A stretch of 49,010 nucleotides of DNA from Ministeria vibrans ATCC 50519 (taxonomy: Eukaryota; Protista; Filasterea). A model generated the notes under the pieces. The model saw nothing but the letters and a program-made list of their open reading frames with translations, was not told where the DNA came from and searched no databases. The first letter of the stretch is position 1; each line of letters begins with the position of its first letter. The translations under genes and the position numbers were made by a program. The DNA is taken from contig CALSCP010002017.1 of NCBI GenBank assembly GCA_943704425.1, positions 80,285 through 129,294 of the forward strand, written 5' to 3'. Below, one piece after another: positions 9,396 through 16,968 of the stretch.

Positions 9396-9931
<536 letters not shown>

Positions 9932-9944
9932 TCATTTTTTTTAT

Positions 9945-12137
9945 ATGTCTTCTTGCACCCTCATCGCCGCGCTTCTGTTTGTGGTTTTTGCAGTTGCGCG
10001 GCCAGAGGTTGTGGAGCGGCTTTCGGATGCAAGGCGGAAGTCTCTTCGCGACGCATCGTTGTGTGGCACCAACACGTCGACGCCGCTGGGCATTGACCAG
10101 GTACACGCGTGTAGCCTGCTCCCCCCCCCTCCCTCACCTTCTCTCCATTTCACTCGCCGCTTTCGTCCTTTCACTCTATTTTGACTCGTTCCGAGACAAA
10201 AATATATATCGGCGTCTTTTTTTGAAATGGAAATAATTATCACTCTGTCCCACAGGAGTTCGCTGTCAATCTCCTGAATTCGTCCATGGCAAGCATCACT
10301 GTGCCACCCGGTGCCTTATTCAACGGCCAGCTGTTCCCCTTCGTTGTCGCACGGCCCGTCCTGGTCGATTTTAGCGGCGCCGTTCTGCGCTGCTGTTCGT
10401 CACTTCTCTCCGCGCTCGTTATCGACTCTGACGGCGTCTCCTTGGCCAACTTCACCATTACGGGCTGTCGAGGACAGTCGGCTGTGCATCTCAGGCCACA
10501 GGCGTCGCTCGTTCTCAGCGACGCGACCTTTTTTGAGAACGGTCCCGACGCGACATTGCTTGCATCTCTCGCGCTCCACACAGCCGCAGTCTCGCTGCCG
10601 TTCCTCGTGGAAACATCTCCAGTCTACGTGCCGGGGATCCAGGTGGACTCGCAAGCGGCGCTGGTGGGAACTCGGCTGCGTTTCGATACGCTTGCGGGGT
10701 TGCCGTCTGGAGCGATTCTTGCTGCTGGTAACACCTCGGTCAGCTTGCTCCATTCGACCTTTGACTCGTGTCAAGGGACCCACGCCGGCGCTTTTGCGGT
10801 GCTCAGAAGTCGTTTTAACATGACGGAGTGCATCGTGCGCGGAACCAGCTCGCTTCAGGGCGCCGGAGTGGCTCGGATTGACGACGGCTCATCTGTCACT
10901 GTTGCTCGCTCTCTCTTTGACGGCTGCTCGGGGTACGCCTCGGGTGCACTGCTTGCTAGTGGTGCGACCTTTGTTGATATCACCAACTCACAGTTTGTGA
11001 ACTGTCGTGCTGGCGGCACGACCGCCACCACGGAAGGTTTTGGGGGTGCCATGACGCTTGCCGACTTTGCTTCTGCCACTGTCTTGCGCTGCTCCTTCAC
11101 GCACTGCCACTCAAACGGCGGCGGTGGTGCACTCAGCTTTGCCTCTGTTACACCTTCTATTGTACAGCACTGTGTGTTTGCCGAGAACACGGCGCTCGTC
11201 GAAGGTGGCGATGTGTACGTGTCACACTCGACTCAACTTTCCCTCCTCGACTGCACCTTCGACTCGTCCGCTGCTCCCGTTGGCGCGTCCCTCTCGGCCC
11301 ATGGCGACGCCACAGTTTCCTATTTGCGATGCAATGCGACACAACACGCTGCGAACATTGGAGGGTTTCTTGCGGCCTCTCAATCCGCCACCGTTCTCAT
11401 GAGCTTCGTCACCGTTTCACGCGTCGCTGCTCATCTCGGTGGTTTTGCTGCCCTCCTTCTCTCCAGTGCCTTTCGGGCCACCCACCTTACCGTCGTTGAT
11501 TCGACAGCTGCAAGTCGCGGTGGCGCGTTTCATCTTGATCATGCCGCCACAATGGAGTGCGACGCGTGTCTTTTTCGCAACGTCACGGCCGATTTTGGTG
11601 GCGCGCTCCACTGCACGTCGGGCGCAACGGTGAGCGCCAGTCACTCGCAATTCCTTGACAACATTGCCACGAGGAGCGGTGGCGCTGTGTACACCATGCA
11701 ACAGTGCACTGTTACCTTTTTAAATTGCACCCTCACCGGCAACGAAGCGCTCCTGAGCACCGGCGGTGCGCTGGCCGCGTTGCACGAGACCACTCTCACA
11801 CTGGCAGAGTCCCACCTGGCGGGGAACACCGCGCCCAGTGGCGGTGCTCTTTCCGTCTGCGGGCCCGTGCAGGTAACCATTGTAGGCTGTACCTTTACCA
11901 AGAACCGCGCCATCAAACAGAACGGTGGAGCACTGCTGGCGTCAGTCGATGACGCAGTCGCACGTGGCATTGCCCAAGAACGGTCTCTCGATGCGCTCGT
12001 GGCATCTCTCGTTGAACTCGAAGCCGAGCACACTCGGTGGTCCGTCACTCCCGAAGTGACACTGCTCACGTCGCTCAATAGCACTAACTGGGCGAGCATC
12101 TTTCCCAGTTCTAGTGCCACCTCCAATACTGCAACAA

Positions 12138-12181
<44 letters not shown>

Positions 12182-14184
12182 TTATCTCTCTTTCCCTCAC
12201 TTCACGTCCAGCAGAGCGCCTTTGTGAGCAACACGGCAGCCACGAGTGGCGGTGCCATTTACTCATTGCACTCCATACAGCGAATCGCGAGCGTGCTCTT
12301 TCATGCTAACTCGGCCGGTGTCTCTGGCGGTGCATTTGCCGCGGTGTACTCGGCCATTGGCGAACCGTACGGCGAACTCGCGGAAATTGCCAGCTGCAAC
12401 TTCACCGAAAACACGGCGGGCGAACGTGGCGGTGGCGTTGAAATGGACGTGCAGGTAGAGTCGAGTTCGCCCGCTCAGTTGCACTTTGCAGGCAACCATG
12501 GTGCACTCAACTCGGCCGCCATCGGCGGCTTCGCGTACATTCTGGCATCACCCACATTGCAAAACCGTGATATTATCTACACCGATATTCTCGCCATCTT
12601 TCCCGTGTTTTTGGCCTTCAACTCGGTTGGTGTCAACCAAGCGACACTCTACGGCAACGACTTTGCTACCGACGCGATGCGTCTCGTCTTTTTCTGGGAC
12701 TATCCCGACTGTCCCGTGTGCCCCGGCAACGTTAGCATGTGCTGTACTCCTGTGCAATCCATTGTGAGCGGTCGTGAAATGTCCATTGTGCCCACCATTG
12801 CTGTGCTCGACGGATTCGATCATCTTGTGCCCACTGCATTGCTTCAAGTGACCATTAGCGCCAGCACGAATAGCAGTCTCGACTCTCAAGCTTACATCCG
12901 CAATCTTCCAAGCACACCACTCTTTGTGACCAATGGAACAGCGCCTGTGCCCGGTGCGCTCACTCTCTACGGACAGCCCGGCGTCGTGACCATTGTGGTT
13001 TCGGCTCAAGACGGCTCGCTGCTGCCCACGTCCTTTTCGCTGACCATTGATGAGTGTGCGACGCTCTATGCCGAAAATGCTGTGCTCTTCTTCGACGGAA
13101 ATGCCCCTGTGGCGCTTTGTGCCAACTCAAACACCATTCCCTCGCAGGTGGTCGTTGTCTTTTTTATTCTCACCGCTCTCTTGCTTCTCGGCGTGTTCAC
13201 AGCTCTCGTCATCTTTGTGCGTCATCGTCACAAGAAGATTGTCGACATGACCGGCTTGCTCTATCTCTGCTTGCACATTGCGGCGCTTCTCATTGGTTCG
13301 GTGCTCGTGTACCAGCGTGATCCTGCCGCCAGCGTTATTCGCTGTCGTGCCTTTTTGCTCATTCTCTCTTGGTGCTATCTTCTTATCACCGTTCCCATCA
13401 TTGTGAAATTTGTCTGGCTCAAAATTCAATCACGTGAGCAGCTACGCAACGTGTCCATGACCATTCCGACGCTGACACTGCTGGTGCCCACGGCGCTTGC
13501 ACTCGCCTTTGCCTTCTTCTACCTCATGGGCTTTAGTCTTGAGGGCTCCGTGCACGTTGCACTGAGTCTGTCTGACGACCGCATTGCCCAAAAGCGCTGT
13601 GTGTTCACGGGCGCCGGTGGCATTGTTTTTGCAGGACTCCTCTTTGGCTTCTTTGTCGTACTGGTGCTGCTTGCGTGGCACACTCGCGCGACGACAACAC
13701 TCTACAACGAAGGCAACCGCATGACATGGGCTATTGGCTGCATGGCCTTTGTTCTGCTTGTCTGCATTGTCATGCTCGTTGCCATGTACCGCAACCAAGA
13801 CGGCCTCTACACTTCCGTCGCCGTTGGCTATCTCCTTTTTGCTCTCATTCTGTTCCGCTTTGAGTTTTATCCTGTCGCCAAACTCACTCGTGGCGCCTGG
13901 GAAAGTCTCGACAAAGAGGCGTTTCTCTCCTATGCCCAAGGAGACCGAAAGGCACGAACACAAGACATAGCGAGATGAAAATAATTATTATTATTGTATA
14001 TTAATAATAATTCATACCATCATTCTGATTCTTGTGTGTAGGCGATGAAGGAACTAGCGGCGGCACTGACTCGCGCCGGCGTGGGCGTGTACGTTGACGA
14101 GATCCGTGCAGAGGCAGGCGCCATTTGGAGAACGGAAGTGGCGCAGGCAATCAAAGCTTCAAAGGTATTTTTTTTAGCTTGTTT

Positions 14185-14232
<48 letters not shown>

Positions 14233-16968
14233 GGAGAGAGAGAGAGCGATTATGCATTTATTTGTTTCTTGCGTTTAGATTTTGATCTTTATGGTTTCTT
14301 CTGAGTCTGCAACGAGTGCATACTGCCTTGAAGAAGTTCAGTTTGCCTATGACCTGAAGTTGCGCATCTTTCCGGTAATTGTTGAAGGAGGGTTTCAGGA
14401 GTCAATGAATTCAGGGTTGGAGAGTAAGTGTTGGCTCTTGCGCGCGTTCGTTTATACTGCAATATTTTACTTTTCTATTTTGGTTGTAGTGCTGATGCGA
14501 CGATACCAATGGACGTATTTTGACAAGGGAGACTTTGATGCGAGCTTTACGCAGTTGATGGAAGGGGTCAGAGGAACTCTGCAGCGGATAGATGTTGATG
14601 GCGTAAGGAAGACTAAAAAAGAATGAGGAGATAACTGAAAGAGGAGCGTGTCATTGTGTGCCAATATAAGGGGGTGGTTTTTTATTTTGACTGTTTTGTT
14701 ACTTAGGGAGCGCCCGCGGCTCGATCCAACTCCACTACCATTCAATTGGTCAGCCCTGAAGATATGAATGAGGCTGATTATCGATTGGCGGACGAACTCA
14801 AACCGAAATCAGTAAGGGAGTGAGGAGTGAAGAATAAGAGAATGGGGAGAATGAGATTGTATACACTGCTTTGCATGATTGCAGCAGAATTCTTTTTTAT
14901 CGGAATAAAATAGTAATAGTTATTAATATGATTTTTTTGTAGGTGTTTTTGTCGTGGTCCCATCGTGACGGGGGGTTTGTCAAGGAGCGACTTTGGCCCG
15001 ACCTGTGTTTGCGTGGATTGGATGTGTGGATTGATTTCTTGTCGTTGCGCAGCGGTGATGACTGGCGGTGTACCATTGGCGATGCAATTCGTGGCTGTGA
15101 CGTGCTTGTGTTTGTGGCGACGCACACTGCTGTAAGTTCACAGTACTGTCAAGAGGAAGTGCTCTATGCGGAACGGTATGGCAAGCGTATTGTGACGGCG
15201 CTTGTGGATGATTGTCGTGATCGAGTGCAACACCACTCGAGCACGGTGGATGTGCGGTCGCTGCTGTTGAATTCACCTGCAGTGGATTTCCGTGAGCAAG
15301 CGACCTATCGCAGTCGTTTAGACGACCTTGCGCGTGTCTGTGCCACCTTTATCAGCGAGGCACAGTTGCGCGAGACGCTTGAAGATCAGGGTGTAGTGAT
15401 GAATTCGTTGCAACTTGTGCCACCAAAGCAGAGCAGTACGAGTAGCGGTGGTGGTAGTATTGCGTCGACGGCTTCTTTGGGACGACGTCTCTCGTTGAAT
15501 CATCATCATTTGGTCGAAACTGACTGCGATATGGTGAAGGTGACCGAGGCGAGTGGCGAGTGCTTGTTAGCGCGAGACAATTTGGCGACGGAGAACGGCG
15601 ACGTGCGGGATGTGGTGGTGCGCAAGACTTCTGGTGGACGCACGAATGCGAATGCGAATGCGAATACGAATGCAAATGCGAATGCGAATGCGAATGTGAA
15701 TGCAGGTGTCAATGAGATGTCACTGCCTTTGGGTCACTCACAAGTGAGCACCGTGTCGGCGTCAACGGTGGTGAGTGGCGGTCGTTTCCGCATTGAGCTG
15801 CTGCAGACTCTCTTTGATGGTGGTAGCAGCAGTGGTTCTCGTGCTGTGACTCCCCTCGATTCCAGCATGGCTCATTCACCGGCGCTCTCGGGAGCCACTT
15901 CCTTTGCGTCGGCTTCGTCGCCCCTCTCGCGTCGCAAGGGGGCACCTCGCTACGCGGCCCTGAAACGCGCCAGCACTGTCAACGAGACGCCCAAGCCTGC
16001 CCCACTCAACATTCTTTCAGAGGAAAGCCATGGTCAAAGTGACACATCGTCTCAGACCACTCCATTGACGATTGCATCAACATCGCGTCGTCGGTTTTCG
16101 ATGCGTCAGTCGACGCTCCAGAACGACCCACGTTTAAAGTTGGACTCTACGCGACGCGACCGAGGACGTGCTGTGTTGCCTTTCAACCGCACTGTTCAGA
16201 TGGGTGCCACTGTGCCGCGCTCCGTGTCCATGCGCGATTATGGCAGGAACGATGGCGAAATAGCAATGGAGTCCATGACGCCCATGGTGATCACGGCCGA
16301 TGTGTCGACGAGCGAGTCGGTTGGTGATCACGGCCGATGTGTCGACGAGCGAGTCGGCTGAGTTTGAGCAAGCGCAGCCAGAAGTGGTGGAGACGGCGGT
16401 GAGGCAGAACAAGAGCAAGTTGCGCAAAGGTGTTTCGTTTGCGACGACATCCTACGAGCGAGCAGCAGATGATGAAGAAGGAGGCGCAAGTGAGGCTGTG
16501 GTGGAACTTGAGTCTAAGAAGGAGGAAGATGTGTCGGAGATGGCGGTTGTGGTGGAATTGGACGGTTCACCGCTTGTGGCGCGTCGGCGGGTTCCCGCGA
16601 AACCCAAGACGACGACGACAACGACGACAGAGACAAAAAATGCCACTGAGAAGGCAGCGGAAGAGGAAGTGCCCCAAGCGGTGGTGGAACGAGAGCCGCT
16701 GCCGCGTGTACTTGTCCATGCGCATACGACTGAGTCAATTACGAGTACAGGTGGCGATGATGAGATTGTGCGCGTTGCTGTGACCTCTGCAGCGCCACCT
16801 CGAGCGCGTTCGCTGCAACGTGGAGGGCTTGTGCGGCAGCAACGACTGTCTGTGCTTGACGACGGGGCAGATCTCAAGTCGGGCGCGACAGTGGAGGAGG
16901 AGGAAGAAGAGAGTGATACGGAGAAGGCACCGGGGGACGATGAGGAGGCCATTGAGTCGTGTGTGTAG
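9945..16968 (+). CDS. Beta-helix ectodomain / class C GPCR 7TM / tandem TIR receptor. Exons 9945-10100, 10256-13951, 14042-14164, 14279-14423, 14490-14602, 14707-14811, 14943-16968; the last exon is frameshifted by a 37-nt duplication
   Basis: Signal peptide MSSCTLIAALLFVVFAVA. Many GGA(L/V/I/F) and FxxN repeats. Seven hydrophobic helices with class C signatures: RHRHKKIV in ICL1, C..K in TM3, ECL2 Cys, LAWHTR..YNEG. TIR1 reads FLSYAQGD..GVYVD..W..EVAQAIKASK..FMVS..SAYCLEEV. TIR2 reads VFLSWSHRD..VWID..GDDW..I.DAI..SQYCQEEV. All splice phases were checked and are in frame. Confidence 0.8.
16285..16357. repeat. Perfect 36-nt tandem duplication (period 37) inside a coding exon
   Basis: tggtgatcacggccgatgtgtcgacgagcgagtcgg at 16285-16320 and 16322-16357. 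Confidence 0.95.

Follow-up and report, generated by a model that had tools for sequence, protein, structure and literature searches.

The 49,010-nucleotide (nt) stretch of DNA analysed here, hereafter the window, comes from the filasterean Ministeria vibrans ATCC 50519 (GCA_943704425.1, contig CALSCP010002017.1, positions 80,285 to 129,294). It is eukaryotic DNA from a genome of ~29.7 Mb, displaying short introns and (CA)n/(GA)n microsatellites, and it carries on its plus strand a multi-exon gene encoding a receptor in which a seven-transmembrane (7TM) domain of class C type is followed by two TIR domains in tandem. By alignment, both TIRs carry the signature of a catalytic pocket, consisting of a Ser in strand betaA, an Asp at the end of betaB, a Gly and an Arg in the BB loop, and Ser-x-Tyr-Cys-x-x-Glu in helix alphaC. 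The likeliest output of the receptor is thus predicted to be an NAD+-cleaving enzyme (NADase) or cyclase that is switched by oligomerisation, a reading to which we assign a probability of roughly 0.5.

The ectodomain, the 7TM domain and the first strand of TIR1 are all encoded by exon 1, which extends to 13951. The underlying open reading frame (ORF; 10286-13978, plus strand, as are all features of the gene) is 1230 residues long and matches the Pfam families Beta_helix (5.8e-18), Chlam_PMP (9.2e-12) and 7tm_3 (40.9 bits, with a cut-off of 33.5 bits). The ectodomain, a right-handed beta-helix with PMP repeats, is encoded by 10286-13141, while the 7TM domain spans 13142-13855 (residues 953-1190 of the exon 1 ORF) and aligns with four paralogues found elsewhere in the genome. 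An assembly gap, seen as a run of N at ~9560-9940, lies directly 5' of the ORF, and the 5' end of the receptor, including a signal peptide, may therefore be incomplete in the model. TIR1 starts ~21 residues past the 7tm_3 match with its strand betaA, EAFLSYAQGDRK, at 13916-13951, which closes exon 1 and aligns ungapped with the TIR1 starts of the paralogues. Predicted intron 1 (13952-14041, 90 nt) has a GC donor (AAG/GCACGA) and an AG acceptor and includes an in-frame TGA at 13976-13978. Exon 2 (14042-14167) encodes alphaA, betaB (VYVD), the BB loop (AGAIWR) and alphaB, and exon 3 (14279-14423) encodes betaC, alphaC with SAYCLEEV, and betaD. The C-terminal part of the domain (LMRRYQWTYFD) is found in exon 4 (14490-14602) and matches the GL(D/E)MLxKR(F/Y)QWT block of the paralogues and of orthologues in Capsaspora owczarzaki. 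The linker between the TIRs, ~45 residues long, follows in exon 5 (14707-14811), which has GT-AG borders and ends in ELKPKS; LKPK before TIR2 is common to paralogues L001 and L004 and to Capsaspora. Finally, TIR2 is encoded completely within exon 6, which starts at 14943, and spans 14943-15353 with the motifs FLSW, VWID, SGDDWR and SQYCQEEV.

Downstream of TIR2, the ORF and sequence give a Ser/Thr-rich, disordered tail of low complexity (15354-16361). Here, a 37-nt tandem duplication shifts the frame and is followed by VVETAV and then a donor-like GTGAGG (16287-16360 and 16388-16405). The C-terminus of paralogues L001, L002 and L003 reads ETAL, similar to a class I PDZ ligand.

The interval 13921-15330 had been described in the initial annotation as a stretch coding for both TIRs. 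Both domains are indeed encoded there, yet not continuously, as the interval is interrupted by introns, three of which cut TIR1; together, its exons code for the cytoplasmic output module of the receptor. The predicted splice junctions yield the paralogue sequence without gaps, including a K/A junction at intron 1, and introns 2-5 have GT-AG borders. The phase-1 junction 14423/14490 restores the Met of the GL(E/D)-M-L-x-(K/R)-R-(F/Y)-Q-W-T block, and an intron of identical position and phase occurs in paralogue L002. For intron 1, the sequence offers no GT donor that keeps both the frame and the TIR, and this intron is absent from the paralogues. If intron 1 were retained, the predicted product would be a receptor ending without its TIRs. 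Another intron of L002 (L002:7496-7800, contig C2106) interrupts TIR2 in phase 1 inside the Tyr codon of SQYCQEEL and is rich in (GA)n/(GT)n repeats.

Both TIRs retain the SxYCxxE motif, as SAYCLEEV at 14315-14338 in TIR1 (Tyr at 14321-14323, catalytic-equivalent Glu at 14333-14335) and as SQYCQEEV at 15138-15161 in TIR2 (Tyr at 15144-15146, Glu at 15156-15158). The other motif classes proposed from the letters alone, FLS(Y/W), V(Y/W)xD and W...I..AI, were also recovered, with FLSY at 13922-13933, FLSW at 14946-14957, and VYVD together with W...V..AI in exon 2. In the six frames of the window, FLSY, FLSW, SAYCLEE (14315-14335) and SQYCQEE (15138-15158) have no other matches, and the pattern S.[YW]C..E occurs exactly twice in the 49 kb, compared with a mean of 0.47 in mononucleotide shuffles.

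TIR2 scores 57.4 bits on Pfam TIR_2 (PF13676), for which the curated cut-off is 28 bits. TIR1 of the window gene was scored and aligned exon by exon, as well as through the paralogue and Capsaspora sequences. Here, exons 2 and 3 match adjacent parts of the profile, with 22.2 bits (2.1e-4, profile positions 14-52) and 20.2 bits (8.8e-4, positions 54-93), reaching 44 bits with frame neighbours, while the N-terminal parts of TIR1 in the paralogues score 60-81 bits. An AlphaFold2 model of TIR2 (pLDDT 91.8, pTM 0.87) displays the canonical order of TIR strands and helices in a flavodoxin-like, five-stranded alpha/beta fold, with the SQYCQEEV motif within helix 67-78. Using Foldseek, the top matches of this model are all NADase-type TIRs, namely SPARTA, SARM1, TIR-1 and RPP1.

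The initial annotation further held that the Glu is of the catalytic type. In profile-to-PDB alignments, the second Glu of the EE pair is matched with Cat1 E74, AbTir E208 and the corresponding Glu of PdTIR (aligned motifs WCWDE in Cat1, WTNYE in AbTir, WPQKE in PdTIR and WCHYE in Toll-like receptors, TLRs), and in every printed alignment it coincides with the conserved Glu, so that the displacement raised there as a counterargument is not seen. The claim is also borne out for the suggested comparison with ThsB. For the Capsaspora orthologues, Table S2 of a preprint released in 2026 by the Sorek laboratory lists Glu 1017 and 1285 and Glu 1415 and 1624 at 0.56-0.89 Å from ThsB E85 in a structural alignment. 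These are the same residues as placed by our alignment, and both TIRs of the orthologues thus have a Glu at the catalytic position by the published structural criterion. Since the TIR2 sequence on its own gave marginal matches in the PDB (best 0.046), profiles were needed for this comparison. The family TIR profile (alignment A1) matches Cat1 at 1.2e-10, the TIR of TLR15 (7ylf) at 4.9e-10, TLR6 at 1.6e-9 and TLR1 at 2.7e-9, followed by the bacterial TIR 7uxr, AbTir and PdTIR at ~1e-7 to 1e-6 and SARM1 at ~6e-6. With a profile of TIR1 units only, bacterial TIRs lead, 7uxr first and then AbTir (7uwg and 8g83).

Beyond the Glu, further residues known to matter in characterised enzymes are present. 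In Cat1, S7, D33, S68 and E74 line the NAD+ site, and D33A, S68A and E74A are defective; each of the four has its counterpart in both receptor TIRs, where FLS supplies the first Ser, V(Y/W)xD the Asp, S-x-Y-C the other Ser, and the EE pair its second Glu. In AbTir, G174A has no or very low activity, R178A is inactive or very low, and E208A is inactive; the equivalents Gly38, Arg42 and Glu72 are likewise present in both TIRs. The Tyr of both motifs falls on AbTir W204, four positions before the Glu. Every cyclase-positive TIR surveyed has an aromatic residue here, usually Trp and occasionally Tyr, and the position is tied to cyclic products. In the TIRs of TLR1, TLR6 and TLR15 (7ylf), the Asp31 position is occupied by His and that of Arg42 by a hydrophobic residue, and at these two sites the aligned receptor TIRs resemble the bacterial enzymes and not the TLRs.

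Conservation within the family points in the same direction. An alignment of 17 TIR units, from the Ministeria vibrans genome, two Capsaspora genes and two metagenomic fragments, contains only five invariant residues (D9, D31, R42, E72 and A76), all intact in both TIRs of the window gene, and one exception each at S66, Y68, C69 and E71. For the catalytic-position Glu itself, the count is 16/16 family units. At three of the five invariant positions (Asp31, Arg42 and Glu72), mutating the matching residue of Cat1 or AbTir reduces or eliminates NADase activity. With the domains otherwise 25-55% identical, these positions make the catalytic pocket the most conserved feature of the family. Since E71 is Thr in TIR1 of Capsaspora CAOG_08660 (YCQTE), only the Glu at +4 is constrained.

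The window receptor belongs to a small family. Five loci in the genome encode a 7tm_3 domain followed by two TIRs, on contigs C1920, C2106, C2373 and C1006 and on the window contig, and S-x-Y-C-x-E-E is found in 10/10 of their TIR units. In an exhaustive search with a profile of the 7TM domain and TIR1 against 1.84 billion proteins, of which the best 150 matches are listed, the 7TM-TIR fusion is seen among the listed matches in Capsaspora CAOG_08484 and CAOG_08660, in a metagenomic fragment (P0017) and in a copy of paralogue L003. Word-based protein searches with the window 7TM region, TIR1 of L002 and the window TIR2 gave no matches, by a design that excludes the long Capsaspora proteins. By Pfam, CAOG_08484 (KJE89761.1; variant KJE89762.1, by coordinates apparently UniProt A0A0D2VIF7) shares the whole architecture of Beta_helix, 7tm_3 and two TIR_2 domains, while CAOG_08660 (KJE92002.1 / A0A0D2VNR5) has 7tm_3 and two TIR_2 domains; in the preprint table, both proteins have Pec_lyase-like domains. 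The Capsaspora TIR2 is 47% identical to that of the window, and S-x-Y-C-x-x-E is found in both TIRs. The Capsaspora genes differ in their intron positions, in a Cys for the betaA Ser of TIR1, and in TIR1 of CAOG_08660 keeping the second Glu only. Both proteins are uncharacterised and are annotated as hypothetical or TIR domain-containing. A further tandem-TIR fragment, apparently from another organism, is P0054 (ENA, 2547 nt). The BB loop of its TIR1 is interrupted by poly-Gln, and its motifs are SKECVEEV in TIR1, with Glu for Tyr, and SRYVQEEV in TIR2, keeping the Glu at the catalytic position in both. In a tree of the TIR units, TIR1 and TIR2 form separate groups (support 96/73 and 91/90). 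As each group holds both species, the tandem is older than the split from Capsaspora, and the topology indicates that the paralogues arose later, within each lineage.

If the receptor acts as predicted, ligand binding or receptor clustering would bring TIRs together head-to-tail, either by pairing TIR1 with TIR2 of a single chain or by pairing TIRs of different chains; candidate ligands of the beta-helix are polysaccharides on bacterial or algal surfaces. Work on Cat1 and AbTir has established that it takes two TIRs in such head-to-tail contact to form an active site, and in the receptor this contact would complete a composite site cleaving NAD+. Given the ~21-residue tether and the ~45-residue linker, a single chain could, in principle, already provide one composite site, with further ones added by clustering or dimerisation. 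The product would probably be of the cyclic ADP-ribose (cADPR) type, as an aromatic residue occupies the AbTir W204 position. The receptor might thus couple an extracellular cue directly to an NAD-derived signal or to the depletion of NAD+, the predicted NADase being gated by ligand, and recruitment of soluble TIR proteins through TIR-TIR contacts may work alongside. The genome also encodes a CD38-type ADP-ribosyl cyclase (G000:C1175:521-1333, minus strand; Rib_hydrolayse, 120 bits), and chemistry of the cADPR type is therefore present in it independently of the TIRs.

Several observations weigh against an enzymatic output, and some of them also fit the main, though less probable, alternative in which the TIRs are scaffolds only, so that clustered receptors recruit soluble TIR proteins as Toll-like receptors do and the alphaC motif serves the interface or the structure. 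The family profile matches the TIRs of TLR15 (7ylf), TLR6 and TLR1 at 40-43 bits, about equal to the bacterial NADases, and these TLR TIRs carry the Glu as well. Likewise, the TIRs of Hydra TRR-2, IL-18Rbeta and MyD88 are close structural matches, and the ranking of folds does not separate enzyme from scaffold TIRs. The receptor TIRs also differ from AbTir at S176, the equivalent of which is Ile in TIR1 and Asp in TIR2. According to the 2026 preprint, most non-TLR eukaryotic TIRs keep the catalytic-position Glu, yet a product was obtained in E. coli from only 4/29 protist and 12/61 animal Glu-bearing TIRs, and the Capsaspora orthologues are not in its table of tested TIRs. Retention of the Glu is hence expected for a non-TLR eukaryotic TIR and is weak evidence by itself. 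Candidate adaptors are encoded in the genome, namely a PB1-like protein (L005, contig C2602), whose TIR is placed as sister to those of the receptors in the tree, and a ZZ-finger protein with a TIR (L007, contig C2643). Countering the scaffold explanation, three of the five family-invariant positions map onto the catalytic residues named above, two of which, Asp31 and Arg42, have no equivalents in the aligned TLR TIRs, and the TLR/IL-1R clade has, according to the same preprint, mostly lost the Glu where it is purely scaffolding. That preprint also reports that protist TIRs can make cADPR, and the two roles are compatible, as the TIR of human TLR4 makes cADPR.

Among the other TIR proteins of the genome, L005 (L005:667-2319:+, in G000) has a 551-residue frame with a weak PB1 match (19.3 bits), TIR_2 at 86 bits and the motif SRYCIEEV, making it a candidate soluble partner. 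The TIR_2 match of L007 (L007:2653-5499:+) is weak, and L006 (L006:3124-4275:-, contig C2128) is a TIR protein with a plant-like SKWCLMEL motif.

Two features of the gene itself also count against the enzymatic prediction. For the window copy, the case for TIR1 depends on the putative GC-AG intron, and an improbable alternative would be that this copy is decaying or lacks its TIRs, with intron 1 unspliced, translation stopping at 13976-13978 and the TIR exons being recent relics or part of a minor isoform. The GC donor, with a moderate fit to the GC-donor consensus, the in-frame TGA and the frameshifting duplication in the tail fit such a decay, as do the five introns of the TIR region, compared with one or two in most paralogues; no transcript evidence was found, the word-based searches giving no matches. 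However, a minority of eukaryotic introns are regularly of the GC-AG type, every TIR exon is open, introns 2-5 have regular borders, and each junction restores the paralogue sequence exactly, including the phase-1 intron common with L002, while the family-invariant residues are intact in both TIRs. The second feature concerns receptor assembly. In animals, the Venus-flytrap domain mediates dimerisation of class C receptors, and neither this domain nor a cysteine-rich domain was found in the ectodomain, for which Pfam gives only Beta_helix, Chlam_PMP and a weak NosD match. Dimerisation of the receptor is proposed by analogy with class C receptors.

It is very improbable that the TIRs are enzymes of another chemistry, such as 2',3'-cyclic nucleotide monophosphate synthetases or nuclease-type enzymes acting on nucleic acids, as reported for plant TIRs, or enzymes of base exchange or ADP-ribosyl transfer. 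The pocket conserved here is compatible with that idea, as a preprint (10.1101/2021.11.09.467869) reports that plant TIRs employ the same Glu-centred pocket for alternative reactions. Yet, the sequence gives no sign of nucleic-acid binding, and the closest characterised relatives by sequence (Cat1, AbTir, BtTir and PdTIR) cleave NAD+.

Compared with known systems, the predicted NADase-type receptor combines features otherwise found apart. The bacterial NADase TIRs (Cat1, AbTir, BtTir and PdTIR), which are the best PDB sequence matches for the family and TIR1 profiles, have the catalytic Glu, the Asp of betaB and the Gly of the BB loop in common with the receptor TIRs; the Arg42 equivalent is shared by AbTir, PdTIR and 7uxr and is Ile in Cat1. 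The receptor TIRs differ in having Tyr for Trp before the Glu and in not keeping the equivalents of AbTir S176 and Y207. Unlike the receptor, these are soluble bacterial proteins whose activation relies on a coiled coil or a CARF domain. SARM1 is a soluble octamer of ARM, SAM and a single TIR, regulated by the ratio of nicotinamide mononucleotide to NAD+, whereas the window receptor carries two TIRs on a 7TM domain, and the TIR domain of SARM1 or C. elegans TIR-1 is 16-18% identical in sequence to the receptor TIRs. Toll-like receptors (TLR1, TLR2, TLR6 and TLR15) are likewise membrane receptors with a cytoplasmic TIR near the membrane, but they have one transmembrane helix, a leucine-rich-repeat ectodomain and a single TIR. 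Metazoan class C receptors (mGluR, CaSR, GABA-B and taste receptors) share the 7tm_3 domain, while the window receptor differs from them in its beta-helix ectodomain and in the enzyme-type TIRs of its C-terminal tail.

The suggestion that the TIRs are of a bacterial TIR_2 style is only partly supported. Outside the family, the best among the 150 matches listed are cyanobacterial and Beggiatoa-type proteins that combine CHASE2 or WD40 domains with three to seven TIRs in tandem, and these share S-x-Y-C-x-x-E, with TIRs 30-33% identical to TIR2 across its full length. These prokaryotic proteins lack a 7tm_3 domain, have no known function, and form a clade apart from the receptor TIRs in the tree. 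As multi-TIR proteins dominate by summed score, single-TIR eukaryotic relatives could not appear among the matches listed. In a language-model search, the nearest cluster is in fact eukaryotic, a rotifer TIR_2 cluster, with bacterial clusters next. Membership in Pfam TIR_2 is in itself no bacterial marker, and a bacterial origin of the receptor TIRs is only a possibility.

TIR domains are known both as enzymes, as in SARM1, plant NLRs and bacterial defence systems, and as scaffolds, as in TLRs. To our knowledge, no characterised receptor joins a seven-helix sensor directly to enzyme-type TIRs. We found no paper naming a fusion of a G-protein-coupled receptor (GPCR) with TIRs or the Capsaspora accessions, and the main text of GPCR surveys covering Capsaspora does not mention TIR. 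The fusion is already in public databases as hypothetical proteins, and a supplementary table of the 2026 preprint lists that of Capsaspora as 'GPCR_A; Pec_lyase-like' with the Glu in both TIRs, undiscussed in the main text. With retention of the Glu expected, the interesting part is the architecture, that is, enzyme-type TIRs on a 7TM receptor. A bolder and less likely reading would be that this represents a G-protein-independent 7TM route, present in the common ancestor of filastereans, in which a class C-type receptor, by a change of conformation or by clustering, turns on the tandem TIR NADase that it carries, so that a messenger of the cADPR type is released, as a unicellular precursor or parallel of the TIR innate immune receptors of animals. 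As Capsaspora is culturable and has orthologues, the idea is testable. If the TIRs are active, NAD-derived signalling would be driven straight from a GPCR-type membrane domain, and its presence in unicellular organisms closely related to animals would bear on how animal innate immunity began.

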